Made by a program: the position numbers and the translations under genes
The notes under the pieces: model-generated
What the model was told of the DNA's origin: nothing
The model's database searches: none
Seen by the model: the letters and a program-made list of their open reading frames with translations, nothing else
Shown: in pieces, positions 11,852-38,148 of the stretch
Numbering within the stretch: the first letter of the stretch is position 1
Layout: the number at the start of each line of letters is the position of its first letter
Source: Schmidtea nova
Lineage: Eukaryota
DNA length: 64,000 bases
Direction of reading: 5' to 3'
Assembly: GCA_044892505.1 (NCBI GenBank)
Contig: CM097883.1
Span: 166,656,001 to 166,720,000, forward strand

Positions 11852-12933
11852 TTTCTATTTTGTAGTCATTAATAATTTCTAATGTGCCAACTATTCTTCC
11901 TGTGTCTAACACAAGGTTAATAAGGGTTAAAGGTGAGATCAGCACATATAATAAAATTAAAAATAAATAAAAATTTGAAATATTTATTCGAATCAAAATT
12001 AATTGAAATTACTTTTAGGAATCTATTAGTAACTTACTTTATTGTTAATTATATTATGAATATGCATTTTTAAATTTAAAAAATAAAAATATATAAAAAT
12101 TATTTGTTTTAACAATAAATTAAAAATAGTATCATTGAATAAACACAATTATCTATCATAATTTACAATATAGTGAATTATGATAACTTTTATTTTTTAA
12201 TTTAAAATCAATATGTAGAAATAAATATGCAAATTAAAGATGTTTTAGTCAGATGTGCAACCAGAAAGAGAAATCATTTCTCTATCTAACTGCATGTGCC
12301 TATTTGATATTTGAGCTCAGATAGAGAAATAATTTATATTTTTGACCAGTGGAACTTTGTTTTTAGCAGTTTTATTGAATTTTTTACAAGGTGATTTAAA
12401 ATTTGCTGTACTTGCTTTCTTTTAAATATTGCATTTTTTGTCTAATTAAATTGGTTTTATTTTTATCGACTGAATCTTATTCTCTGCAATACATCAAATA
12501 AATCTGAAAGATATTATGTGTATTTTCGACAGTTAATATGCATTTTATTGATATGAATAAAATATTTTATTACAAATAATCTTATGTTCTATGATTTGGA
12601 TGTATTTCATTGTAAGGATTGTTTTAATTTATTTTAATAATATTACATGGATTCAATTCACTGAAATATTTTATAACTGTGATGCATATCAATCTGTCTT
12701 TGAAAAATTCTTTGAAATAATGCAATGTAAACTAATAAATATTAACTTCAAAATGTGCTTTAAAATATATTTAATTTTTATAATACGTCAACGCAGGGAT
12801 CCCCAAAGTGCGGCCCTCGAGCAATTCAAATGCGGCCCCTGGCCGAATTTTATAAATTTGAATAATTAAATTACATGGCTTTGTTTTTTAATAGGGCCAT
12901 TTTGTAACATTTTTTAACGAACTAAGTCTTGTT

Positions 12934-13630
12934 TGTGGTGATTCATGCATAGGCATCTGACCACACAGGCTATATGTGTCCAATTGACATTTTGTGGTCG
13001 CCTATATTTTGTAATTTTTGTAAAAACTTTCAATTAATTTTTATGTTTATTAATATTAATATTAATATTAATATTGGTGTTAATATTAATATTGATCGTT
13101 ATTGGTGTTAATATTAGTGTTAATTGTAATATATATATTAATAATTTTGTTTAAAAAAGAAAAATTTTTAGGGCGTTTTAATAAAAAAAAATAAACTTTT
13201 TAAAATGGATGTTGACATTTTTGATGCACTTAATTATTTGACAGGTTCCACAAAAACCAGTGCTAAATTTAAACTCTGTGATTTCAATACAATTTCAGAT
13301 TTGAAAAATTTCAATGACGACTGCATTGACAAAATGGAAGAATATATACAACTTCAGTTTTCATTGATGGGTTTAGATGAAAGATCTATCTATCTAGATG
13401 GTGATGATATACATAACCCAAAATGCTTTATGATTTCTCCTGGTTTACGCAATCGTATATTTAAAGCCGTTTCTACAATTGTTAATTCTTTAAATGGGAT
13501 TTCTTCTGTCTCATGCCAAAAGTCGATTAATTCAAATTTGATTGATCATGAATTTAAAGAATCTCTTGTCAATGAGAAATGCATCAAACCGTTGAACATC
13601 ATTCATATTCCGGACGTAGTAATCCTTACA
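12934..13630 (+). repeat. 5' LTR
   Basis: Starts TGTGGTGATTCATG and ends GTAATCCTTACA. No differences from the 3' LTR seen by eye. Confidence 0.97.
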
Positions 13631-15241
13631 ATGGTGTCAGAAGTGGGATCTGATATTCCTGTTTCTACGTCTCTACATGCGCGAGACGAAGTCGTGCGAC
13701 AGTCCGGACCACTGGAGACTCATACTCCTACTACTGCGGACGTCTGGGCCAGATTTGTTGATGTCCAGCATGTTTCTCTCGTGACAAACTACGATCTCCT
13801 CACTATCCGAGAACTTTACTTTCAAGGTAACCACATTATGTTAAATATTGTTCACCTTTTTAACTTGTGTGGTCTGGGCTTTTTGTGTGTGGTCGCCACA
13901 TTAGCACCCTTACCTGTTCCCTTATCTGGGGGGTCTAATCTCAATACACATAAGGTACCTTGCACTGACATAATGGCAAATGATCAGGGCCATGCCGCCC
14001 TATGTGCTACTGAGGGTTTTGTTTTTGTCTCAACATCAGACAAGAATCGGATACTTCCCTTTAGTTTAAGCCTATCCTTTAAAGGACTTCTCAGTTACTT
14101 AAAATATGAGAAAAATGTTTACATAAATGACACGTATGCTACATACAGGGGTTTTGTACATAGATTCGACGATCGACCCTTATATGAGCATATAAATGCT
14201 GGCGACACTATATATTTGCGGTACCGTATGCGCGGGGGCGCAGACAGCGACAATCTGTCTTTTTCAGACCAACCGCCTTCGCCTGGGACTACACAGCCAG
14301 ACATCCCAACATCAATGCACAATTTGCCCAAGATTCCGTTCTTTTTGGATCAGAACGGATCTCCTGCATCCTGGTTTTTTGTACTGGAAAGACATTTTAG
14401 GATCAGGACAATCATATCATCCTCCGAAATGTTCGACCACTTGATCACCTGTTTGCAAACGGAACTACTTTCGAAATTGGCTCATAATTTCTTGACCATT
14501 TCTACTTCTGCTGACCCGTACACAGCTCTTAAGAATCTAGTCCTCGAGAATTATCGCGAACCTAAGGCCGATATTTTCTCGCATTACTTCAAGGCACAGT
14601 CTCTCGGGTTACAACGTCCATCCGAATTCCTCAAAAGAGCCATTGATAACCTCGAATCCTTACAACAAGGTATCACTACCGACGACTCTCTGCTTCGTAG
14701 ATTTTTTTTGTCGGCTTTGCCACCTCAGACACAGGCAATATTGGCAGTTACGGAGTCAACCAACCTCCGGGATCTCGCCAATATGGCAGATAAAATCGCC
14801 GAAGCATCGGGCGTTAGCACTTCGCAACAGTGCAACCAAGTCAATTCGTTTGAGACTTTAGCCGCTGATACAGCCAGTTCAGCAAAGCGAAACATCCAGA
14901 GTTCAGATATCGTTTTGGCTGCAATTGAGCAGATATCTGATCGATTGAAGAAAATTGAGGCTCGGGATGAAAGACGGTCATCTCCGCACAGACGCACCTT
15001 TTCTCGTGAACGTTCTTTTCCCCGTTCTAAGAAGATTTGCTACTATCACGAAAGATTCGATAGAAAAGCTCAAAAATGCCACATAGGTTGCGAATATGCA
15101 GGCAGGAGTTCAAGCTGTGAGCTTTTAGATGTCTGCGTCTATCATGGGAGATACAGGCAAGCAGCCAAATACTGTTTAGAAGGCTGCAGGTATTTCAAAA
15201 GTAATCCAGCACCGCAGAACAAGTCACATCCAAAAAACTAG
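13205..15241 (+). CDS. gag: Gag polyprotein with LTR-encoded N-terminal domain and ubiquitin-like domain (678 aa)
   Basis: Uninterrupted ORF. Gag-like LPKIPFF...PASWFFVLERHF...DPYTALK region and two C-x2-H knuckle-like motifs (CYYHERFDRKAQKC, CVYHGRYRQAAKYC). UBL at 14015-14239 ends YRMRGG. An alternative start is possible at ATG 13973. Confidence 0.85.
   Translation: MDVDIFDALNYLTGSTKTSAKFKLCDFNTISDLKNFNDDCIDKMEEYIQLQFSLMGLDERSIYLDGDDIHNPKCFMISPGLRNRIFKAVSTIVNSLNGISSVSCQKSINSNLIDHEFKESLVNEKCIKPLNIIHIPDVVILTMVSEVGSDIPVSTSLHARDEVVRQSGPLETHTPTTADVWARFVDVQHVSLVTNYDLLTIRELYFQGNHIMLNIVHLFNLCGLGFLCVVATLAPLPVPLSGGSNLNTHKVPCTDIMANDQGHAALCATEGFVFVSTSDKNRILPFSLSLSFKGLLSYLKYEKNVYINDTYATYRGFVHRFDDRPLYEHINAGDTIYLRYRMRGGADSDNLSFSDQPPSPGTTQPDIPTSMHNLPKIPFFLDQNGSPASWFFVLERHFRIRTIISSSEMFDHLITCLQTELLSKLAHNFLTISTSADPYTALKNLVLENYREPKADIFSHYFKAQSLGLQRPSEFLKRAIDNLESLQQGITTDDSLLRRFFLSALPPQTQAILAVTESTNLRDLANMADKIAEASGVSTSQQCNQVNSFETLAADTASSAKRNIQSSDIVLAAIEQISDRLKKIEARDERRSSPHRRTFSRERSFPRSKKICYYHERFDRKAQKCHIGCEYAGRSSSCELLDVCVYHGRYRQAAKYCLEGCRYFKSNPAPQNKSHPKN
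13632..13649 (+). promoter_or_regulatory. Primer binding site, tRNA-Leu
   Basis: TGGTGTCAGAAGTGGGAT lies 1 nt after the 5' LTR and is the reverse complement of the typical eukaryotic tRNA-Leu 3' end ATCCCACTTCTGACACCA. Confidence 0.9.
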
Positions 15242-18200
15242 TCTCGCCATCTCTGTACGCGGCATGCACAGATGGCAATCTCTTTTCTTCTTCCCTTTCT
15301 TTTTCATTTTTTGTTTCCGCCCAAATTATTTCACCTCTCTGTACAGACATAGCACGCAACACCATACAATTTCTAGTAGACACCAGATCTAGCATCTCTC
15401 TTTTGCCCAAGTCATTGTACAGACCATGCCAACCGGGCAAATTACATTTGAGAACTGCCAATGGCAACCAGATGTACACTTCTGGTACATGCAACATCAC
15501 ACTCCGTCTGCTTGATCAAATAGTCAATTGGACTTTTCACATTGCGGAAGTCACACACCCGATATTAGGTATTGACTTCTTACAAGCGTACAGCATTACG
15601 TTAAATTGTGAGCAACACAGTTTATCATTCTTCAAGCCGATTTCAGCTTCTTCCAATGAACTTAAAACGAGTCCCAAACCTTCTTCCTGCAACGCAAAAG
15701 CCTTTGCGGTCGACAGCATTCATAATGATTTTGTTAAGAATCTCAGTTCACACAACATTTTTTCGGACATTGTGGGACCAATCAAAAGAGAAGTCAGCTC
15801 GAACTTCTGTCACGAAATTACAACTTCCGACTCGCACCCTCTCAGAGAGAGAGTTCGTCCAATCTCGGAAGACAAATATAACTTTCTCAAGACTGAGTAT
15901 GAATCTCTTTTGGCTAGTGGCATTATCCAACGATCCTCCTCACCTTGGGCCTCACCCATTCACTTCGTGACCAAAAAGGATGGATCTTATCGGATATGTG
16001 GCGATTACCGCCGCCTTAACAACATAACGCAGCACGACTCTTATCCGATGCCACTCATTAATGAATCTCTGGCGCGTTTCTCTAACTGCAAGATTTTCTC
16101 TACATTTGACCTAGTCAAAGCTTATCATCAAATCCCTGTTGCTCCACGGGATGTACCAAAAACAGCCGTCATCACTCCAATCGGTCTGTTCGAGTTCTTG
16201 CGAATGCCTTTCGGCTTGCGTAATGCAGCACAAACCTTCCAAAGGCACATCGATCACATCTTGTCAGATTTAAATTTTGTCGTCGCGTACGTGGACGACA
16301 TATTAATCGGTTCCCCCGATATTGAGACTCACAAGGCACATCTACGTAAGCTCGTAGCTACATTAAACAAAAATCAATTAAGAGTTAATTTGTCCAAATG
16401 TAAATTTTTTCAACATCAAGTTGATTTTCTTGGACACACACTATCTGCAGACGGAATAGCTCCACAATCAGCTCGTTTAGAATCCATCAGGAACTTCTCT
16501 AAGCCTGAAACTGTAACGCAGCTTCGCAGTTTTTTAGGTGTTGTCAATTATTGTCATCGATTCATACCAAATGTTTCGAATGTTCTTGCTCCGTTGACAT
16601 CACTCAGCTCAGGACCGAAACGTTCCATCGTAAAATGGACAGATAAATCCAATGCTGCGTTTGAAGAAGCAAAAAGAGCACTCGAGTCAATTCAGACTTT
16701 AGCTTACCCAAGGCATTCCCTTCCATACAGCCTAACGACAGATGCATCCGATGTTGCGGTCGGAGCTGTCCTAACTCAGTCACAAGACGGAATAGTTCGA
16801 CCTCTCGAATTCTTTTCGAAAAAGCTAACCGAAACACAGACTAGATATTCAGCTTTTGATCGCGAGCTCTTAGCCATCTTTCTTTCGGTTAAGCACTTCA
16901 AACATCTGCTGGAAGGAAAATCCACCACGGTTTATACTGATCACAAGCCGTTGGTTCACATAACTACAATGAAAGATCCTTCTCCAAGGCAATTACATCA
17001 AATCTCCTTTATCACAGAGTTCACCGGTGATATCAGACATATAGCTGGAAAGGATAACATCATAGCTGATTTTCTGTCTCGCAGTACAAACGCAATTTCG
17101 TTAGGACCTTTATTCACTACTTCCACTCTACGAGATAACAAACCAACAGAAGCCGATCTTCAGTATTTTCTACACAATAAATCAAATATCGACGGAATCG
17201 ATTTTGACTCCTCACTCTCAGGTGTACTTAGACCAATTCTTGGAACTGAGCTTCGTCGACCCGCATTTCATGCAGTTCATAACTTACACCATCCTGGAAC
17301 AACAGCCACTTATCAGCTGCTAAGAAACCAGGTCGTTTGGCCTTCTATGAGGCGAGATGTGAAACTGTGGGTTAGCGAATGTCTAAAATGTCAATGCAAT
17401 AAAGTAACCTGACACATCAAACCACCGATCACGCACTTTCCAACCGGTAACCGGTTCGATGTCGTTCACATCGATCTTGTTGGTCCTTTGCCGATAGACA
17501 ACGGTTTTTCATATCTTCTAACCATGATTGATAGGAAGACAAGATGGTTTGAAGTCGTTCCTCTACGATCCATATCAGCAAATATTGTTGCAGAAACTTT
17601 TATATCAGAATGGGTCGCACGTTATGGCATTCCAAGACACATAATTAGCGATCGAGGAGCCCAATTCGAATCGCAACTCTTCATGTCTTTAACAGAACAA
17701 CTCGGCATTAAACGGCTGCGTTCTACAGCTTATCATCCACAGACGAACGGTCTCATTGAAAGGTTTCACCGGACACTCAAGCAGTCGCTCCGAATACTCT
17801 CTTTAAATCATCGTTGGACAAAAGCCTTGCCTTTCGTTTTATTGGGTTGGAGGAACACACCTTCTAAGACGACTGAATCATCCCCAGCTCAATTACTCTT
17901 CGGTACCAACACTACGGTACCTAACGAACTAATTGACTTAGGAAATGAACCAACACTCGAAGAACTTGGCACCGCCAGACGCCATTTCCTGGATATTGAT
18001 AGCAATCCTATATTTTCGTCTGCCAACGCATACAAACCTTTTATACCAAAATCTCTATCTTCAGCCAAGTTCGTTTGGATCCGCACAATCTCGGACTCAG
18101 CGTTGAAGCCTAGGTATACTGGACCTCATCGCCTACTAGACATAATCGGAAATTACGCCACTGTCAAGATGAACGATTCATCTGAGACAATCGCTCTGGC

Positions 18201-18651
18201 ACGAATCAAACCAGCTTTTGGATTATCGGAATTCTTAGACTATAACGCCAAAGAATTCATTCCAACTCCTACAGATAATTCCTTCCAATCTGATGACACC
18301 TCTCCAAGTACCAGTCTTCCACGATCTCAGCCGGACTTGGATAGTAATATTCATTCGCCAACAACTCCTACTGAGGACACTACGTTATACCATTCCGATT
18401 TCTCTCCTACAAACCTGGACCAAGCACCTTCACACTCTGATGGTACTCACATTACCGTTAGACCCGAAACAAGCTCTTCACCTGCTTGTAGCGAGTTGCC
18501 AACTCCAGTTCCAATTTTGAAGAAATTGACACAAGTTCAACTTCCACCTGGATCTACTAGGAAGCACCGTGTTTCCATCAACCCGTGGGTGCGCGAACGT
18601 CGTATTGGGGACAATCCCAATGCTCCCACCAGACTCCACCGCATTTTTTGA
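15205..18651 (+). pseudogene. pol: Pol (protease-RT-RNase H-integrase) with one premature stop
   Basis: Motifs FLVDTRSS (protease, DTG changed to DTR), RICGDYRRLN, YVDD, LTTDASD, HHPG...CLKC and HIDLVGP...SDRG...ERFHRTLK. In-frame TGA at 17410-17412, after which the same frame continues into the integrase core. Confidence 0.93.
15232..15238 (+). promoter_or_regulatory. Putative -1 ribosomal frameshift site (A AAA AAC)
   Basis: Slippery heptamer directly before the gag TAG. The pol frame is open from 15205 and is -1 relative to gag. Confidence 0.75.
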
Positions 18652-18766
18652 AACGCATCCTCTTAACACTCCATCATTTTCTTTCTTCCTTCTTTTTCTT
18701 TTTCTTCGTTTTTCTTTGCCGCCAACACATTCTTTTCACCACACACTACTGCTCCGCAGCTTTCGT

Positions 18767-18776
18767 AGGGGGCTAA
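18767..18776 (+). promoter_or_regulatory. Polypurine tract
   Basis: AGGGGGCTAA immediately before the TG of the 3' LTR at 18777. Confidence 0.75.
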
Positions 18777-19473
18777 TGTGGTGATTCATGCATAGGCATC
18801 TGACCACACAGGCTATATGTGTCCAATTGACATTTTGTGGTCGCCTATATTTTGTAATTTTTGTAAAAACTTTCAATTAATTTTTATGTTTATTAATATT
18901 AATATTAATATTAATATTGGTGTTAATATTAATATTGATCGTTATTGGTGTTAATATTAGTGTTAATTGTAATATATATATTAATAATTTTGTTTAAAAA
19001 AGAAAAATTTTTAGGGCGTTTTAATAAAAAAAAATAAACTTTTTAAAATGGATGTTGACATTTTTGATGCACTTAATTATTTGACAGGTTCCACAAAAAC
19101 CAGTGCTAAATTTAAACTCTGTGATTTCAATACAATTTCAGATTTGAAAAATTTCAATGACGACTGCATTGACAAAATGGAAGAATATATACAACTTCAG
19201 TTTTCATTGATGGGTTTAGATGAAAGATCTATCTATCTAGATGGTGATGATATACATAACCCAAAATGCTTTATGATTTCTCCTGGTTTACGCAATCGTA
19301 TATTTAAAGCCGTTTCTACAATTGTTAATTCTTTAAATGGGATTTCTTCTGTCTCATGCCAAAAGTCGATTAATTCAAATTTGATTGATCATGAATTTAA
19401 AGAATCTCTTGTCAATGAGAAATGCATCAAACCGTTGAACATCATTCATATTCCGGACGTAGTAATCCTTACA
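18777..19473 (+). repeat. 3' LTR (carries a second copy of the LTR ORF, 19048-19500)
   Basis: Direct repeat of 12934-13630. Confidence 0.97.
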
Positions 19474-19747
19474 TTGTTGAATTACTTATCTTCAATTTAA
19501 CAATCCCATTATATTTATTTAATATTCATTTTAACAGCATTTGCCAATATAGATTTTTTATAATTCATTTGCGTTTTACAGAAATGCAAAATATCTTTCC
19601 CACTCAAAGTTAACGATGCTTTGCACCACGGTTACCTTCCTCAGTGATTTTGGCTCTTCTGAAATTGTGTTAGTGATTACACTTCCTTACGTTCGTAGTT
19701 ACGTTAATAAAACGCCATATACTTAATTTAATTTTTTTCTTCAATAA

Positions 19748-21608
19748 ATGGATGGAGCAAAAAAACGTCGCATAGCAGACGAAAGAAGGCAGTTTAAAGA
19801 AAGTTGGACAAATGACTATTTTGTTATTGAGAACAGTGAAAAGATAATTTGTTTAATATGTCAACAAATAATTTCGGTGATGAAAGAATACAATGTCAAA
19901 AGACATTATGAGACCAATCTTGAGGATTACGTTGCTTATGTTGGAGAGCAGAGAAAGCAAAAGGTGACTAAATTACAAACTGGGCTTTCAGCCCAGCAGT
20001 CAATCTTTAAAAATGTTATTAAAATCAATGAAGCAAGTACTGAGGCAAGCTACATTGTTGCTCATGAAATTGCAAAAAGATGTAAACCGTTCAATGATGG
20101 GGAATTTATAAAGGATTGCCTTATGAAAGTGGTAGATAAAGTGTGTCCCGATAAAAGAAATGCATTCAAAGGAGTCAGTCTGTCCAGTCAAACCATAACA
20201 CGCAGAGTTGAAGACATTGGCAAAGATCTTGAAAATCAACTTCAACTAAAGGCTCAAAAGTTTGTTTAGTTTTCATTGGCAATAGACGAAAGTACAGATA
20301 TTGGAGACACTGCTCAGCTATTAATTTTCATTCGTGGCATAACTGACAATTTTGAAGTTATTGAAGAAGTCTTAAAATTGTGTAGTCTAAAAGGAAGAAC
20401 GAGGGGAACGGATATGTTCGGAGCAATGTGCACAGCAATCGAGGAAATGAAATGTCAATGGTCAGCACTCACTGGAATAACTACAGATGGTGCACCGTCA
20501 ATGGTCAGCGAAAAAATTGGTCTTGTTGGTTTGATTAAAAAAAGCTGCTGAAGAAGGGCGAGATATTCTTCATTACTACTGCATAATACATCAAGAAGCA
20601 CTTGTAACGAATGTCTTAAAGATGGAACATGTTATGACTGTCGTTGTAAAAACTGTAGATTTTATTAAATCACGGGGACTGAATCATCGCGAGTTTAAAA
20701 CGTTTCTGGAAGAATCTGAAGCGGATTTTGGTGATTTGATTTATTTTACAGCTGTTCGATGGTTAAGCCGAGGTGCAACATTGAAACGTTTTTTTAATCT
20801 CAGAAACGAAATTTCCGAGTTTTTGGATTATAAAAACGAGAATAAAAAGGAATTGATTGAAAATGGACAAAATTGTTTAGTTCTGCTGCAAAATGTGAGT
20901 TGGTTGACAGATTTAGCATTTTTAGTAGACATCACTTCACTGTTGAACGAACTTAATTTGAAGTTGCAAGGCTGTGGAAAGTTTATTACTACTTTAGTGG
21001 ACAGTGTGAAATCGTTTGTAAGAAAGCTAACCCTACTGCAAAAACAACTGAAGGACGGAAATTTATCTCATTTCGTGGCTTGCACGGAGATTTCAAACCA
21101 AAACAAACAAGCTCTTGAACTTTTGCGTTCTGACAAATATTTCGAGATTATTAGCAGTTTACTATCTGAATTTGCCCGACGTTTCTCTGACTTCAGATTA
21201 CATGAAAAGTCATTTGCTATTTTCCAGAATCCATTTGCTTGTGAGCCAGATATTGCACCAACTGATTTGCAATTAGAACTGATTGACTTGCAAGAAAATT
21301 CAGAGGCGCGAACTTCATTTCATGCTTTAAGCTTGATGGAATTTTATCGAAGCCTTCCGTTTTCGGCCTATCCGTCTATTCGACAACATGCTCAGCGTAT
21401 CAGGTCACTTTTCGGAGCCACCTACATCTGTGAAAGAACATTTTCTACAATGAATATCACCAAATCCAAGATGAGGTCACGATTGACTGATAATCATCTT
21501 AGCGCAATCCTGCGCATTGCAACAACAAGCTTCGAACCTCGCTTTGGTAATATAATTTCTCAAAAATCTCAACTTCACAAATCACATGACGTTCCCCAGA
21601 AGAAGTAA
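19748..21608 (+). pseudogene. hAT transposase (GTF2IRD2/SPIN-like) pseudogene
   Basis: Motifs RQFKESW...CLIC, AIDESTD, GITTDGAPSM, CIIHQEAL, VRWLSRG and LFGATYICERTFS. Stop at 20267-20269 and a frameshift near 20545. Confidence 0.92.
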
Positions 21609-26302: not shown

Positions 26303-29170
26303 TCAACAAATTTTATTTAATAAAACTGTTTCCTCTTCAGTTGGATCTTGGAATTGCTGATCTGGATTGATTCTTGGATCGATATGTTGAAATATAACCA
26401 AGTCACCTTCCATAAAATGGCCATATGCCAAGCTTTTACTTTTCGCAACCCATTTCCTTTTGTCATCTTCGTTTGACAGTCTTTTCATTTTTAATAGTAA
26501 AAAGTTTGTGATTTGTACTTGTGATTCTGGTTTGGGGAACAAAAAATATTTGATTATTATTAAAACAGTCCAGGTACGACTGATGCTTTATGTCAGTACC
26601 CGCTAATGTTGCCCCCTTAGCTTTATTAGTTTCCTCGTCACCTAAAAGACCATAACATTTAGGTCTAAGAAACACCCACTCCTCGTATTTAAGCCCTTTA
26701 TTCTCGTCTTTGAACTTGCCAATGACAGAATCAAGGTTGATTCGGATCATAATTAGAAGTGTCAAGCAAGTTATCTCTTATCATGGCCGGTAAAAGAATA
26801 TCAAGCTTACAATTTCTAATCTCAAGAAACAATGAATCGGTGTCACCAGCTACAATGTTGATTTCGCAGTTGAATTCGTTACGATATTTTTGTAACTCTT
26901 CATACTGCAGCTGGTGCATTCTAAGTTTAGATAGATCCAGTACAGTTTGACCAATGTAACTTGGTCTATCCAAACACACCGATTCCTGATTCAGCAACAC
27001 TGCAACCAAATCATCGTCAATTTCGAAAGTCCTTTTAAAAGTTGGCTTAGAAGTATATGTAATCAGCCTAGAAGCCGAATTACATAATCTTAAATTTATG
27101 CGCTTTTTAAGATTCTCTACGGTTTTACCGTAGAGACTATTATTTAATAATTTATAATAATTTTTACCCAGAGCATTACTTGATTCTGCTCTAAGTCTGG
27201 TATTGGTATATATGTAATCCTTAAAAATATATGCTTGTTTAAATTTAATTGCCCTATGGACATGAGTTATTTTTAGTCCAAGAGAAAGAAAAAGTTTGAG
27301 AAGTCTCCAATGAAGAACACAGTTCTTCTTGGGATAATGTGTAAGCATCAACTTCTCAACCTTTGAGTCAGGTGAACACATCTTTTCAGCGGCAACTGGC
27401 AAATCATCCAGCTTGTCGAGAATCGAATCAGGAATTTCTAAATCGACTTCTAATGTAAATCCAAATGTTAATACTTCTAAATCAGCAGATTGACAGTTAT
27501 AAATTATTTTATTTAATTTTTCCCTATCAGTTACCCATTTAAATTCTTTATAAGGTAGTTTTTGGCTTAAATCCCCTCCATATAAATTATTTATATCTAT
27601 ATAAAGAAGCTCAGTGTCGTCGGAAGATACTACATGATGTTTATTAACAAATGTTAACCCACCACGGATCCCCCTTTCGAAAAGATTATAAATCTCCATA
27701 TCTTGAAGCAATTCAATTAGAGATTTTAAAGTCATCAAAGCTGAATTCCATGACATGCCTGGAATTTCCAAGAAATTAAGAGGCTCAAGTCGGTTATGTG
27801 CAATGGATTTTGCCCAAAATTGCTGAAAAAAGTCGGCAAGTAAGAAAACATCCAATTTCAGATATAGCATCATATAATCAAACAATGTTTCACAAAAGAA
27901 TTCATCCCATATATGTTGAGCTTTTTCATACTCGTCAATATTAACTCCCTACCAAATCGGTGGCAACTCGTATGTTTTTTGTAAAACCTCTAAATAAGTT
28001 GAAAAATTATATAGTAATATGCCTTTGGAAGTAATAATAGTCCCTATAAATTCGGATGAAGTAAGAGGAAAATCTGTTAGTCTTTACAGCATCGTTTAAG
28101 CTACAGCTTACAAATTGGCAAGAATCGATAAATTTTATAGTTAAACTATCGACTCTTGCATTTAAAGTCAAAAACTTTTCGCTTGTAGTAGGAATACAAC
28201 TTATATCCCATTTATCGAATTTATTTAAACCATACTTGAGGATATGATGTAAATCATATCCGTGTAAATTATGAAATATTACTGGCATGATGAATCTTAT
28301 TTGCCGAGAAAAATTGCATTTTGAGCAAGCTGCACCCAAGTATTTACCTGTATAATGGTCATGATCTTTAACCGGATTTCTCAAAGGTTTATTACACAAA
28401 TAACAAATTGTAGAACTACGAAATGATCTTATTTGTGAAGAGGAAAGATATTCCATTTTCTTTTTGGAATTATTTACAAAGAATATTTATTGCCAACCCG
28501 GGGTTTTTCGCTTCAAATTTAGGAATATTACATAATTTCATTGGAAAATCAGAAGGATCAAACACAAGGTCTGAAATATTATAATTATAAGACTTACTTC
28601 TATTAGATTTCACATCCTTGTATTTTAAAATTGCCAAAATACTATATATAAGACAAAATTTATCTGTATTCTTTACATTGACAGTGCAATGTTTTGAATT
28701 TAATGATGGTGGGGTTGAACAAGAACCGTGACCACTCAATCTACTTATTTGAGAATATTTTGTAAGTTTAATGCTTATTTCTTTAATTTTATTAATTGAC
28801 CAGTTGCTGCCATTTTCGCAACCTTAGTCATTTTTTCGCTTAATAGAGCAATACCTTCATCTAAAAAGGTATCAATCATTGGCTTTGCGGAATTTGATAT
28901 TATAAAAGATTGTAATTGCTTATTCTTTTCAAATTCTACATCAATGCAAAATTGTACTTTTACATATCCCATTTTGGAAATAACTGAATTAAATTTATTT
29001 AATAAAGGCGAAGGAATAATTAATTAATTTAAATTTAAAGAATTCACATCCATTTTAACAATTGCATGCGATTTTTTCAAATTATATTTAACCAAAGGTT
29101 CAACAGAACCACAATATTGGACAACATGTAAATTAGGAATAACTAAAGCATCGTCATTTGATGAATGGAC
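26303..29170 (-). pseudogene. Protein-primed family B DNA polymerase (Maverick-type), left-arm copy
   Basis: Motifs KDHDHYTG (endonuclease VII-like Zn region), HNLHGYD, FIDS, ERGIRGG, YIDINNLYG, KLLNNSLYGKT, GDTDS, GKFKDE and LRPKCY. Frameshifts and an internal deletion near 28465. Confidence 0.92.
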
Positions 29171-30780: not shown

Positions 30781-33700
30781 GTCCATTCATCAAATGACGA
30801 TGTTTTAGTTATTCCTAATTTACATGTTGTCCAATATTGTGGTTCTGTTGAACCTTTGGTTAAATATAATTTGAAAAAATCGCATGCAATTGTTAAAATG
30901 GATGTGAATTCTTTAAATTTAAATTAATTAATTATTCCTTCGCCTTTATTAAATAAATTTAATTCAGTTATTTCCAAAATGGGATATGTAAAAGTACAAT
31001 TTTGCATTGATGTAGAATTTGAAATGAATAAGCAATTACAATCTTTTATAATATCAAATTCCGCAAAGCCAATGATTGATACCTTTTTAGATGAGGGTAT
31101 TGCTCTATTAAGCGAAAAAATGACTAAGGTTGCGAAAATGGCAGCAACTGGTCAATTAATAAAATTAAAGAAATAAGCATTAAACTTACAAAATATTCGC
31201 AAATAAGTAGATTGAGTGGTCACGGTTCTTGTTCAAACCCACCATCATTAAATTCAAAACATTGCACTGTCAATGTAAAGAATACAGATAAATTTTGTCT
31301 TATATATAGTATTTTGGCAATTTTAAAATACAAGGATGTGAAATCTAATAGAAGTAAGTCTTATAATTATAATATTTCAGACCTTGTGTTTGATCCTTCT
31401 GATTTCTTAATGAAATTATGAAATATCCCCAAATTTGAAGCAAAAAACCCTGGACTGGCTATAAATATCCTTTCATATGTCGAGTATGATCTAAATAATA
31501 TTAATGAGGAGGAGGTAGTCATGAAACATCCATTTGTAGATATTATTCATAGGTCAAAGGTTGTAGGTGGCACTCCAATTAATTTGATTTTTTTAGAGGA
31601 AAATGACTCTTTTCATTATATTGCAGTTACCAATATTAATAGACTTTTGAATTGTGGCACTCTTTCTGTTACTGATGTTCAAATAAGGCTCACTTGGTGC
31701 GAGCGTTGCTTGAATGGTTTTAGATTGACTGAAGCTTTTGAAAAACATCAGGCTTTATGCACAAAAAACCAGTTAGGTACAACTTTGTACACTTTAATTT
31801 CAGATAAGAACTTGGAATTTAAAGATTGGTCGAAAATTGTTACCCCTCCTTTCGTTGTATATGCCGATTTTGAGGCTGTTTTACCGAAGGACAATAAGTA
31901 TTTTCAACGTCACTTGCCTATTTCTGCTGGCTTGTTGCTTATTAATAACTTTACTGGCGAAAAATCTTATAACAGCTTTTATGGTGTTAACTGTGTAGAA
32001 GAGTTTTTGACTGAAATCAATGATATAGGAGAAAAAGTAATTTTGCCTTACTTTATAAATAATTCCAAAAAGAAAATGGAATATCTTTCCCCTGCACAAA
32101 TAAGATCATTTCGTAGTTCTACAATTTGTTATTTGTGTAATAAACCTTTGAGAAATCCGGTTAAAGATCATGACCATTATACAGGTAAATACTTGGGTGC
32201 AGCTTGCTCAAAATGCAATTTTTCTCGGCAAATAAGATTCATCATGCCAGTAATATTTCATAATTTACACGGATATGATTTACATCATATCCTCAAGTAT
32301 GGTTTAAATAAATTCGATAAATGGGATATAAGTTGTATTCCTACTACAAGCGAAAAGTTTTTGACTTTAAATGCAAGAGTCGATAGTTTAACTATAAAAT
32401 TTATCGATTCTTGCCAATTTGTAAGCTGTAGCTTAAACGATGCTGTAAAGACTAACAGATTTTCCTCTTACTTCATCCGAATTTATAGGGACTATTATTA
32501 CTTCCAAAGGCATATTCTCATATAATTTTGCAACTTCTTTAGAGGTTTTACAAAATACATACGAGTTGCCACCGATTTGGTAGGGAGATAATATTGACGA
32601 GTATGAAAAAGCTCAACATATATGGGATGAATTCTTTTGTGAAACATTGTTTGATTATATGATGCTATATCTGAAATTGGATGTTTTCTTACTTGCTGAT
32701 TTTTTTTCAGCAATTTTGGGCAAAATCCATTGCACATAACCGACTTGAGCCTCTTAATTTCTTGGGAATTCCCGGTATGTCATGGAATTTAGCTTTGATA
32801 ACTTTGAAATCTCCAATTGAATTACTTCAAGATATGGAGATGTATAATCTTTTCGAAAGGGGGATCCGTGGTGGGTTAACATTTGTTAATAAACATCATA
32901 TAGTATCTTCCGATGACACTGAGCTTCTTTATATAGATATAAATAATTTATATGGAGGGGATTTAAGCCAAAAACTACCTTATAAAGAATTTAAATGGGT
33001 AACTGATAGGGAAAAATTAAATAAAATAATTTATAACTGTCAATCTGCTGATTTAGAAGTATTAACATTTGGATTTACATTAGAAGTCGATTTAGAAATT
33101 CCTGATTCGATTCTCGACAAGCTGGATGATTTGCCAGTTGCCGCTGAAAAGATGTGTTCACCTGACTCAAAGGTTGAGAAGTTGATGCTTACACATTATC
33201 CCAAGAAGAACTGTGTTCTTCATTGGAGACTTCTCAAACTTTTTCTTTCTCTTGGACTAAAAATAACTCATGTCCATAGGGCAATTAAATTTAAACAAGC
33301 ATGTATTTTTAAGGATTACATAGATACCAATACAAGACTTAGAGCAGAATCAAGTAATGCTCTGGGTATAAATTATTATAAATTATTAAATAATAGTCTC
33401 TACGGTAAAACCGTAGAGAATCTTAAAAAGCGCATAAATTTAAGATTATGTAATTCGGCTTCTAGGCTGATTACATATACTTCTAAGCCAACTTTTAAAA
33501 GGACTTTCGAAATTGACGATGATTTGGTTGCAGTGTTGCTGAATCAGGAATCGGTGTGTTTGGATAGACCAAGTTACATTGGTCAAACTGTACTGGATCT
33601 ATCTAAACTTAGAATTCACCAGCTGCAGTATGAAGAGTTACAAAAATATCGTAACGAATTCAACTGCGAAATCAACATTGTAGCTGGTGACACCGATTCA

Positions 33701-34045
33701 TTGTTTCTTGAGATTAGAAATTGTAAGCTTGATATTCTTTTACCGGCCATGATAAGAGATAACTTGCTTGACACTTCTAATTATGATCCGAATCACCCAT
33801 TATATAGTAGGAACCTTGATTCTGTCATTGGCAAGTTCAAAGACGAGAATAAAGGGCTTAAATACGAGGAGTGGGTGTTTCTTAGACCTAAATGTTATGG
33901 TCTTTTAGGTGACGAGGAAACTAATAAAGCTAAGGGGCAACATTAGCGGGTACTGACATAAAGCATCAGTCGTACCTGGACTGTTTTAATAATAATCAAA
34001 TATTTTTTGTTCCCCAAACCAGAATCACAAGTACAAATCACCAAC
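30781..34045 (+). pseudogene. Protein-primed family B DNA polymerase (Maverick-type), right-arm copy
   Basis: Same motif series as the left arm, split across ORFs 30979, 31212, 31521 and 32681. Keeps a ~580-bp segment that is deleted in the left arm. Confidence 0.92.
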
Positions 34046-34900: not shown

Positions 34901-37684
34901 TTACATTCTTCCTACATCCCCACCAGATTCATCTGAATCTTTAACAACTCTTTTTCTAATATCGCCCACGTGTCGTGGCATATCGTATCCATTACATCTG
35001 ACTAAAAATTTTGTATTTGATAATGGTTTGATGATAAGACCATCTTTCCATCTTTCTGTGAATTTTTGGTTCATATTCGGTTTTATCCATACAGGGTCAC
35101 CAGCAGAATATTTTGCTTCGACTAATATCTCTTTTTTATTGTAACTTGGCAAATTCAGCTTTGGATTATATCTAAATATAGCTCTAGATGGACAAATATT
35201 ATTGTTGTTTGGTGTATTGTTGAACCAGTACACAGCTTCTGCGATTGATCCTGAGGACCTAGCTGCTAGCGATTTGATTGTCCGATGGCTGCGTTCAATG
35301 ATCCCGTTTCCCCCTGGACGGTTCACTGTTCTAAATACCAACTCAATATTCCATTTATCTGCTAATTCTTGAAATTTTCTAGATCTAAAAGATAAGTAAT
35401 TATCTAACAATATTTCACTTGGAGCTCCTCTTTCATATAACACTTCATTTAAAGCATTACATATCTCTTCTACATTTTCATACTTAATTTTCTTCCAGAT
35501 TGCATATCTCGATGGTCCACAATCAATGATTGTCAAATACTTATCTTTAGCAAATTTAGCTACATCAATTTCTAAACGGCACCAATTTTCATCACAGCTT
35601 AGTTCACCTTTTTACCACGTTACTGGCGCTGGGTCAATTGATAAGCATTGATTACAACTTGCAATTATTTCTGAGATCTCATTATCCACATTCAGTAGCC
35701 CCGCTTCCGATGCTAAGAATCGCATACGATTTTTCCCTACATGGCAATTCTTGTGAATCTCTAATAACACATCTTTTGAGCTTTTTTGATTGCCTAGAGC
35801 TGCGACTTCTTTTTTAATAATCATCCAGTTGGCTGGTACTCTCGTTAATACATCAGCCTTGTTATTTTTTGTAGATACAAACTCAATGTCCATTTTAAGT
35901 TCATACTCAGTCGCTAAATCTTTTAAAAGCTGCAGCCTTCGTCGTATTAACAACTCTGAATTTGCTTTTGTATGTATTTTTCTGTCGCTTGATAATATGC
36001 TGTTAACCCAACATACAACTGATTTACTATCGGATTTAATTTTGATGTACTTTAACTTCCATTTAATACATAAATTAATACCCTTCACAATCGCTTCTAA
36101 TTCCACCAAATTAATGTGTCTTGAATCATCAGGTTTTCGCAACCAACACGCATCTTCAACCACTGAACCTTCCATTTCTAATACAATTCCAATGGCGATC
36201 GAACTTGCATCACACCAAATTATGCCTGTCTGGTTGCTGGGAACACTCCAAATACCTGACGATGGATCTCTTTCATTCACTCTTTCTAATAACCATTTTA
36301 CTTTGTCAACGATATGATTTTCTATTGAATCATCCCAATTTCCACTGGATAGCCTCTTGATATATGAGCAAGCTGGCCGCAACCATCCAGACACAGGATA
36401 AATTCCAACTAACTGGCCACATAACGAATACAGCTCTCTTCTTGAAAGCCCTTCATTCAATTCATTCATTCGAATATCGTTCGATCTTTTCCAATGTAGT
36501 TCATTATTCTTTCGAAATACATCAATACCTAATACTCTTATACTGAGAGTACCCTTGACCTTTTCTTCTTCTTTACATATCAAACCAAATTTACGCATTT
36601 CTGCACTTACTTTACTTGCTTTGACTTTAGATTCATCTACGAATATATCGTCTATGTATGAACTCGTGCTATTCTTGATTGATTCATTGTTGTTCAATAC
36701 TTTATTCACAATCTCTGTCATTATCGTTGGCGCGATATTCAATCCAAATCCCATTCTCGTAAGCGCATATCTCTTCCCGTTAACCATACAAGATTGATAT
36801 CGCCACATACTTTTATCCACGCGTATTTGCATATATGCATCAGATAAATCTAACATTGCAAATTCTTTACTTAAACATCTCCATGATCGTAATTTTTCAG
36901 AACAGATATCTGCATTCCCACTATATACATCAATATATTTATTGATACTCCTAAAGTCAAATACTGGACCCACTTTCGCTTTATTTAACTGAATTATACC
37001 ATAAATAGGTACTGATCCGATCGGTTTGCCCATTGTTTTCTCGTCATAATCAACTAGATAGCTGTTAGATATCCAAGATTTCAAGATACGCCTCGTCTCC
37101 TGATCCTTACTACAATTATCATAAAAGTTTGAATTTCTATTAGGTAGAAATTTCGGTGGCTCTGACTTCCAATCCCATTTGACAATCCATTTCTCGTTTT
37201 CAAATTTCGCAGAGAAATTTTCCTTCAATATTTCTGACATGCTGCTACTAGAGCACGCTACGTGACAAAGTGCTTCTTCACAACCGAATATGGCTTCTTT
37301 ATTCAATCGAACTCCACCAAACCTATTAATAGCATTAACTCCTAAAATTACATCATAATTGGATACCAGTTTCGGGTATATTAAACAATCAATATTAAAT
37401 AACGTATCTCCAACCCATATATCAACTTTACTTCGCTCAGCGTATATGATTGAACCATCAAGCATCGCTACCGCAGTCATAGATTTTCGTGGATTTCCTT
37501 TTACTATAGTGATAGTGCTGCCCGAATCAACTAAACATGCTTTTACATTACCATTAACTTTTAGGAGTCTCACATATTCACAATTCTTGGGGCAACACCC
37601 GACTCCACATTGTGTGTAGCCCCTTGATCTTTTCCCGACTTGCAAAACCTTGAAATATGTCCCATAATACCGCATTTTGCACAT
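34901..37684 (-). pseudogene. pol: Pol (PR-RT-RH-IN) with premature stop
   Basis: ORFs 35612-37684 and 34901-35536 are in the same frame, separated by TAA at 35612-35614 (W*KGELSCDENW...). Confidence 0.9.
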
Positions 37685-38148
37685 ATGATGTTACGTCTTT
37701 CTGGACAGTATCTTACCACATGATTAGCACTATTGCATATATAGCATTTTCGATTGGCTTGTCTTCCATTATCTGATCTTGGTACTACTACTGCAACCGT
37801 TTCATTGTCATAAATTTGATGACTTGCAATTTTCTTTGCTTGAGAGACTAACTCATTCATTGTTGACGCTGTTGACATCTTTAGTTGATTTGCCAAATCA
37901 CTTGGTAAGCTATTTACAAAAAATCGGGTTAATAGATCACCTGAACATTCCAACAGTGACCTTAATTCATTTACATGGACATCCATGTTATCACCCATTA
38001 ATAACTTTTTCTGTAAAAGTTTCGTAAAAGCTTCTTGCTCGCTCATACCGAAGGTTTTCAATAATTCCTTCTTCAGCATACCAAACTCCATTGTCGTATT
38101 GCTTTTCTTTAACTGTTTGAAAACTGCATAAGATTGCCCTTCAAGTAA
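37570..38148 (-). pseudogene. gag: Gag, 5'-truncated
   Basis: Knuckles CYICNSANHVVRYC and CAKCGIMGHISRFC. The frame continues upstream of the ORF call (FLLEGQSYAVFKQL). Possible -1 slippery site G GGA AAA at 37630-37636. Confidence 0.85.

Follow-up and report, generated by a model that had tools for sequence, protein, structure and literature searches.

A predicted ubiquitin-like domain with a Gly-Gly terminus in front of Gag in a Ty3/Gypsy-type LTR retrotransposon

The window analyzed here (64,000 nucleotides of Schmidtea nova contig CM097883.1, assembly GCA_044892505.1, positions 166,656,001 to 166,720,000 of the forward strand) contains only transposon-type genes, including a young Ty3/Gypsy-type LTR retrotransposon (12934-19473, + strand). 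The element is bounded by a 697-bp 5' LTR (12934-13630) and a 697-bp 3' LTR (18777-19473), which have TG...CA ends and are 100% identical by blastn, and it is flanked by a target-site duplication (TTGTT; 12929-12933 and 19474-19478). A primer-binding-site (PBS)-like sequence (13632-13647) lies one base after the 5' LTR, and a G-rich, polypurine-tract-like run (18765-18776) abuts the 3' LTR. The pol region (15205-18651) is in the -1 frame relative to gag, overlaps it by 37 nt, and is broken by one in-frame stop, with no frameshifts. Pfam hits to RVT_1, RT_RNaseH(_2), Integrase_H2C2, and rve occur in that order, and tblastn gave a single-frame match to intact relatives. They are preceded by a protease-like region (gag-asp_proteas; E = 1e-4, below the curated cutoff) with conserved motifs but with a catalytic triplet that is non-canonical at one residue. 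No tRNA gene that could identify the primer was found in the window or in the related loci examined.

The gag gene is contained in a single stop-free open reading frame (ORF) of 678 amino acids (aa) (13205-15241; stop codon at 15239-15241), which begins inside the 5' LTR. The LTR-encoded N-terminal part (13205-13630; 142 codons) is followed by a leader (13631-14011; ORF aa 143-269) with no detectable homologue, a ubiquitin-like domain (14012-14239; ORF aa 270-345), a linker (14240-14323), and the Gag core (14324-15241). The first ~110 aa of the ORF resemble the N-termini of an unnamed protein family (proteins P0004 to P0010; here and below, P numbers denote proteins and L numbers denote loci): a phmmer search of 1.84 billion representative sequences with ORF aa 1-370 yielded seven hits (best E = 3.5e-22), all of them to aa 1-156. 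The Gag core comprises a helical region (about 14360-14566), matching Pfam DUF7041 at ORF aa 386-454 (E = 5e-10), followed by a long helix and a Cys/His-rich C-terminus. A Foldseek search with a model of the domain plus Gag did not confirm a capsid fold.

A preliminary description of the locus had proposed that 75 residues (14015-14239) upstream of Gag form a ubiquitin-like domain with an intact RGG terminus. Our analysis confirmed this translation, which ends in M-R-G-G, with two refinements. Counted in register with ubiquitin, the domain is 76 aa long and starts one codon earlier (14012), and its fusion to Gag is not quite direct, because about 30 residues predicted to be disordered (residues 87-117 of an AlphaFold2 model starting at 13973; pLDDT below 50) separate Gly-Gly from the helical Gag core. 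AlphaFold2 predicts a beta-grasp fold for the domain (strands at 2-8, 13-19, 42-46, 49-51, and 67-72, a helix at 24-33, and a short 3-10 turn before the last strand) with a flexible tail (pLDDT 83.5; pTM 0.71), although the model was built from an alignment of only three sequences. The 50 best Foldseek matches in the PDB are all ubiquitin, ISG15, NEDD8, or SUMO-type chains (probability 1.00; TM 0.56-0.66), with about 18-23% identity to ubiquitin chains in the structural alignments. Matches in BFVD are giant-virus ubiquitins, baculovirus v-ubi, and pestivirus polyprotein fragments that carry ubiquitin inserts.

By sequence, the domain of the window taken alone showed no significant similarity to ubiquitin. 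Pfam gave no hit, phmmer against the PDB gave only chance-level hits (E = 0.43) to picornavirus capsid chains, a word-indexed protein search restricted to ORF aa 250-365 gave none, and the phmmer search described above found only relatives of the LTR-encoded part. Relatives were found only through the Gag core and then through a profile, and a scan of JGI metagenome contigs with the Gag alignment confirmed nothing. Although no sister copies of this exact family exist in the window or the databases, five related Gag lineages from public assemblies carry the domain at the same place; the Gag cores (compared with P0001, P0002, and P0011 to P0014) are 33-50% identical, whereas the domains are only 18-26% identical to each other. 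A profile of the six domains hits single 76-aa ubiquitin chains in the PDB at E = 4e-6 to 1e-5 (28-30 bits) in exact register (positions 10-76 against 10-76), ISG15 at E = 3e-7, and ubiquitin-ribosomal-protein fusions at about 1e-5. Pfam PF00240 hits two of the six members (best E = 4.9e-5), which is below the curated cutoff. The assignment rests on the family profile and on a predicted structure. The domain is a diverged but genuine member of the ubiquitin family, inherited from the common ancestor of at least six lineages, and the suggestion in the preliminary description that it is old and family specific is supported. The alternative that the resemblance is a chance or decayed feature (e.g., a dead ubiquitin pseudogene fragment) is contradicted by the predicted fold, by the profile hits, and by the retention of a foldable 76-residue domain in frame and in the same place in six lineages.

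The pattern of conservation within the domain is selective. In ubiquitin numbering, Gly47, Gly75, and Gly76 are kept in 6/6 lineages, position 74 is Arg in 5/6 (Tyr in P0013), position 73 is hydrophobic in 6/6, and position 72 is basic in 6/6. In contrast, position 48 is aromatic in 5/6 and never Lys, and position 44 is polar in 5/6, so that the tail is kept while the usual receptor and chain-building positions are not. The residue following Gly-Gly is Ala, Ser, Asn, Ala, Gln, or Ala, and never Pro. The possibility that Gag translation starts downstream of the domain, at the Met of MHNLPK, was not supported: this Met is not conserved, two of the six lineages (P0002 and P0013) have no Met at all between Gly-Gly and the Gag core, and the conservation of a foldable domain shows that the region is translated. 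Ratios of nonsynonymous to synonymous substitutions could not be measured, because the closest copies (the P0013 cluster, the L006 units, and L007) differ at 0 codons in the domain and 0 in Gag and the other lineages are too diverged.

These observations suggest, with moderate confidence, that the domain acts as a processing module operated by the host. In this hypothesis, which was also raised in the preliminary description, host deubiquitinating enzymes would recognize the ubiquitin-like fold and its conserved tail and cut after Gly76, releasing Gag with a defined N-terminus that is not Met (Ala in this copy), whatever was translated upstream. Cleavage itself is inferred, as is the class of enzyme, and because the element has its own aspartic-protease-like region, cleavage elsewhere in the linker by that enzyme cannot be excluded. 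Alternatively, the domain may stay on Gag as a built-in signal (e.g., to engage ubiquitin-binding sorting or budding machinery, the proteasome, or particle assembly). Its conservation at a fixed position next to Gag in six lineages favors this view, and experimental fusion of ubiquitin to retroviral Gag can stand in for late-domain function in budding (PMC2958808). However, we consider this unlikely, since the positions matching Ile44 and Lys48 of ubiquitin are not kept, an uncleaved domain has no evident need for Gly-Gly followed by a non-Pro residue and a disordered linker, and a linear ubiquitin-like fold with an exposed Gly-Gly is the normal type of substrate for cellular deubiquitinases.

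The frame upstream of the domain remains open for 280 (this element), 103, 184, at least 229, and 123 codons in five of the six lineages, while the other two frames carry 4 to 29 stops over the same spans (17 and 29 in this element). These leaders share nothing except the PBS-encoded peptide, and some contain pieces of host genes. One includes a 5'-nucleotidase piece (PF05761; E = 1.9e-26), that of the window contains the N-domain of the P0004 family, and a WWE-domain ORF lies just upstream in L002. Removal of upstream sequence at Gly-Gly would explain why the leaders can be long, open, and completely different between lineages. Which start codon is used is uncertain (candidates at 13205, 13631, 13838, and 13973), and the long leader noted in the preliminary description is partly encoded by the LTR. 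It is possible, but only tentatively supported, that translation starts at the Met closest to the domain (13973), the leader being an untranslated relic of captured coding sequence and the domain an N-terminal folding and expression aid that is trimmed off, as in ribosomal-protein fusion genes; the module would then only remove a short extension. A Met lies 13, 9, and 12 residues before the domain in the window, P0011, and P0013, respectively, and P0001 (Met1 to Gly76 and then Gag, with no in-frame ATG in the 39 open codons upstream) shows that the domain works without any leader. Against this, besides the open frames themselves, the first ATG of the ORF (13205) sits in a strong context and matches the natural start of a protein family. 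Moreover, an ATG (13631-13633) overlaps the PBS-like sequence in frame with the ORF, and the open frame runs through this ATG in the window, P0013, and P0027. The identical PBS-like 16-mer sits next to the LTR end or upstream of gag in L001, L005, L006, and L007; in L001 the ATG shares the frame of the domain but stops intervene.

Another, unlikely, alternative is that cleavage occurs but that the product that matters is the released leader plus ubiquitin-like piece, either as a modifier or decoy or as a means of delivering captured host-derived domains as accessory proteins made in step with Gag. The open frames, the recognizable host-type domains, the basic position 72, and the intact Gly-Gly end favor this view. 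However, the leaders differ completely between lineages, L001 has no leader at all, the captured pieces are fragments rather than whole domains with shown activity, and nothing demonstrates conjugation. In a more speculative and doubtful extension, the domain would be a portable separator that makes the 5' end of gag a landing pad, from which captured pieces (a zinc-finger-protein N-domain inside the LTR, the 5'-nucleotidase piece, and the WWE-domain ORF) could be translated from the same message and released from Gag, possibly still carrying a conjugatable ubiquitin-like end.

LTR retrotransposons and retroviruses are normally thought to mature Gag and Pol with their own aspartic protease, and fixed additional protein domains are regarded as rare (PMC9289625). 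We found no description of the present architecture in full-text literature searches, although these did not cover subscription journals or transposon databases and a prior description cannot be excluded. If the proposed cleavage occurs, this clade would be a natural case of a retroelement handing one processing step to the host ubiquitin system, and its diverged domains, in which only the tail and the fold are conserved, would help show what deubiquitinase recognition minimally needs. The layout of P0001 is that of cellular ubiquitin-fusion precursors (ubiquitin-eL40, ubiquitin-eS31/S27a, and polyubiquitin), which are generally cut by deubiquitinases after Gly76, but here the partner is a retrotransposon Gag, the domain is only about 20% identical to ubiquitin, and five of six lineages carry a long variable extension in front of it. 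In cytopathogenic pestiviruses, a host-derived ubiquitin-family module likewise sits in a polyprotein immediately upstream of the protein to be released (PMC2850149); those insertions are recent, nearly unchanged host sequences that arise sporadically by RNA recombination, whereas the present domain is old, strongly diverged, and fixed in a retrotransposon clade. The 2A-like peptides of non-LTR retrotransposons split one reading frame into separate products (PMC3708506), as is proposed here, but they are about 20-30 residues long, act on the ribosome during translation, and need no protease. Engineered Gag-ubiquitin fusions (PMC2958808) are laboratory constructs designed so that ubiquitin stays attached, whereas this fusion is natural, lies N-terminal to Gag, and keeps a presumably cleavable Gly-Gly tail.

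More distant DUF7041 Gags (P0003 and P0015 to P0018; 249-267 aa) have a homologous core (E = 6.5e-16 to 6.9e-23) but lack the domain; P0003 starts a few residues before the Gag core, and the other four are too short to hold it. Downstream of the element, zinc-finger/hAT-type ORFs (19748-21608) do not continue the ORF of the 3' LTR, as that gene has its own start and the C-terminal finger of the P0004 family does not match it.

Positions 14015-14239 (+) translate to the 75 residues listed in the preliminary description and end in M-R-G-G. This stretch lies inside a single stop-free open reading frame (ORF) at 13205-15241 (678 aa), the C-terminal half of which matches Pfam DUF7041 at aa 386-454 (E 5e-10) and ends in a Cys/His-rich region. 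A second reading frame (pol; 15205-18651) follows, shifted by -1 and overlapping gag by 37 nt, and contains a protease-like region (gag-asp_proteas, E 1e-4, below the curated cut-off, with conserved motifs) and then RVT_1, RT_RNaseH and RT_RNaseH_2, Integrase_H2C2, and rve, in that order. The element spans 12934-19473, and its two LTRs (12934-13630 and 18777-19473) are 697 bp long, 100% identical, and begin with TG and end with CA. A 5-bp duplication (TTGTT) flanks the element, a PBS-like 16-mer starts one base after the 5' LTR, and a G-rich run abuts the 3' LTR. The same 16-mer occurs at the matching place in four related loci. This is a very young insertion of a Ty3/Gypsy-type LTR retrotransposon. 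The gag ORF is intact, but although the LTRs are identical, pol carries one in-frame stop (and no frameshift) and the protease catalytic triplet departs from the canonical form at one residue, and this copy probably could not supply its own enzymes. No sister copies of this particular family were found.

The 14012-14239 domain alone gave no significant sequence hit. Pfam returned none, a phmmer search of the PDB returned only chance-level hits (e.g., E 0.43 to picornavirus VP3 capsid chains over about 45 residues for positions 13973-14260), a word-indexed search of the region returned none, and a phmmer search of ORF aa 1-370 against 1.84 billion representatives gave no hit to the domain. The decisive step was to search with the Gag core instead. 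The first search returned two related Gag proteins, P0001 and P0002 (50% and 42% identical, respectively), and a profile search added P0011, P0012, P0013, and the fragment P0014; all of these relatives come from unannotated assemblies (i.e., ENA ERZ25039515, ERZ2272490, and ERZ2271605, plus Logan runs). All five full-length relatives carry a domain at the same place, immediately before Gag. In each, it ends in Gly-Gly followed by Ala, Ser, Asn, or Gln and, in five of the six sequences (that of the window included), Asp. A profile of the six domains hit single 76-residue ubiquitin chains in the PDB at E 4e-6 to 1e-5 (28-30 bits), with profile positions 10-76 aligned to ubiquitin residues 10-76. 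ISG15 scored E 3e-7 and ubiquitin-ribosomal-protein fusions scored about 1e-5, whereas the very low E-values for polyubiquitin chains only reflect repeated units. Pfam PF00240 hit two of the six members (best E 4.9e-5). A chance resemblance to ubiquitin was considered as an alternative and appears very unlikely.

AlphaFold2 modeling of the window's domain, which relied on a shallow alignment of three sequences, predicted the beta-grasp order of elements and a disordered tail from residue 76 (pLDDT 83.5, pTM 0.71). The 50 best Foldseek matches in the PDB are all ubiquitin, ISG15, NEDD8, or SUMO-type chains (probability 1.00, over about 78 aligned columns). In the viral structure library, the matches are giant-virus ubiquitins, baculovirus v-ubi, and pestivirus polyprotein fragments with ubiquitin inserts, and no retroelement Gag appears among them. 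By predicted fold and profile, the domain is a member of the ubiquitin family, but it is not ubiquitin itself.

The six domains are only 18-26% identical to that of the window, while the Gag cores are 33-50% identical. Ubiquitin numbering was taken from a gapless alignment with ubiquitin and applied to the alignment of the six domains. Gly is found in 6/6 domains at positions 47, 75, and 76. Position 74 is Arg in 5/6 (Tyr in P0013), positions 73 and 69 are hydrophobic in 6/6, and position 72 is basic in 6/6. In contrast, position 48 is never Lys (aromatic in 5/6) and position 44 is polar in 5/6. Although dN/dS could not be computed, the fold and the C-terminal tail are under constraint, and the positions that ubiquitin uses for chain building and receptor binding are not. 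This pattern fits a module whose job is to be recognized and cut at its tail; a rival reading, in which the domain stays attached to Gag as a signal, is considered unlikely.

A model of the protein from 13973 to the stop, again predicted from a shallow alignment, shows three parts, namely, the domain, about 30 residues with pLDDT below 50 that start at the R-G-G tail, and a helical Gag. In P0001, the protein is exactly Met1 to Gly76 followed by Gag, and no in-frame ATG lies in the 39 open codons upstream, which is the layout of a cellular ubiquitin-fusion precursor. The P0001 gag (locus L001) is not followed by pol; instead, positions 2303-10282 of L001 contain AT-rich tandem repeats and then ORFs with TBP and faint A32-type ATPase hits. 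In the other five lineages, the frame before the domain is open for much longer (i.e., 280 codons in the window, 103 in locus L002, 184 in L005, at least 229 in L008, where it runs to the contig end, and 123 in L006), while the other two frames carry 4-29 stops over the same spans. The L006 contig (1-10324) holds two head-to-tail units of 5076 nt that are 98.7% identical, and several other samples give contigs of 5.0-5.3 kb for the same family, suggesting tandem or circular forms, or assembly wrap-around at the LTR. More distant DUF7041 Gags (P0003 and P0015-P0018; 249-267 aa) lack the domain: P0003 starts just before the Gag core, and the others are too short to hold the domain.

The leaders upstream of the domain share nothing with each other except the peptide encoded by the PBS, and some of them contain host-type coding pieces. 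The leader of P0012 (L008 256-1860) and its cluster member P0027 holds a 5'-nucleotidase fragment (PF05761, E 1.9e-26, above the curated cut-off) in frame with the domain and Gag, and P0027 begins just before the PBS-encoded peptide. In L002, a 437-aa ORF with a WWE domain (411-1724) lies between the 5' LTR (about 8-322) and the ubiquitin-like-Gag gene, in another frame, and overlaps the open part of the gag frame by about 200 nt. In the window, the first ~110 residues are encoded inside the LTR (ORF start at 13205 in the 5' LTR and 19048 in the 3' LTR) and are homologous to the N-termini of an unnamed family of 242-403-aa proteins (P0004-P0010; best E 3.5e-22) that end in a C2H2-like finger. 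This region looks like the 5' end of a gene captured into the LTR. A reading in which the released leader-plus-domain is the functional product was also considered but remains doubtful.

The preliminary description had raised the possibility that Gag translation starts downstream of the domain, at the Met of MHNLPK (14315). However, this Met is not conserved, and P0002 and P0013 have no Met between Gly-Gly and the Gag core. The candidate starts in the window are 13205, which lies inside the LTR and has A at -3 and G at +4; 13631, which overlaps the PBS; and 13973, which lies 13 residues before the domain. The second of these is an ATG formed by the base before the PBS plus the first two PBS bases (13631-13633 in the window, 368 in L001, 141 and 5217 in L006, and 213 in L007). 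It is in frame with the domain in four of five PBS-bearing lineages (i.e., the window, L001, L006/L007, and P0027, but not L005), although in L001 in-frame stops lie between it and the domain, and gene callers use it as the start of the proteins P0022 and P0023. It is possible, though tentative, that translation starts just before the domain and that the leaders are relics. The mechanism proposed below works for all three candidate starts, among which we could not decide.

The best-supported reading is that host deubiquitinases cut after Gly76, which would free a Gag of 333 aa that begins with Ala and would uncouple Gag from whatever is translated upstream. The cleavage, the enzyme class, and the fate of the released piece are inferred from how linear ubiquitin fusions are processed. 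On this reading, the module would work like cellular ubiquitin-fusion precursors and like the ubiquitin insertions of cytopathogenic pestiviruses (PMC2850149), and it would be functionally analogous to 2A-like sequences in non-LTR retrotransposons (PMC3708506). In full-text literature searches, which did not cover transposon databases or subscription journals, we found no natural ubiquitin-like-Gag fusion in a retrotransposon, and the only Gag-ubiquitin fusions found were engineered ones (PMC2958808).

The surrounding window is AT-rich, includes four runs of N, and is full of other transposon remains. Just downstream of the 3' LTR (19748-21608) lies a separate hAT-type gene remnant with a Spin-doc zinc finger and a weak (below cut-off) match to the hAT dimerization domain, which is not continuous with the LTR ORF. 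The rest of the window is a transposon graveyard (26731-27885, 31521-33946, 34901-38091, and 57212-63307), which holds Maverick/Polinton-type DNA polymerase B pieces (one with an Endonuclease VII motif, as also in L005), a second RT/integrase element on the minus strand, a further RT, a DUF659 ORF, and a mariner-type transposase piece.
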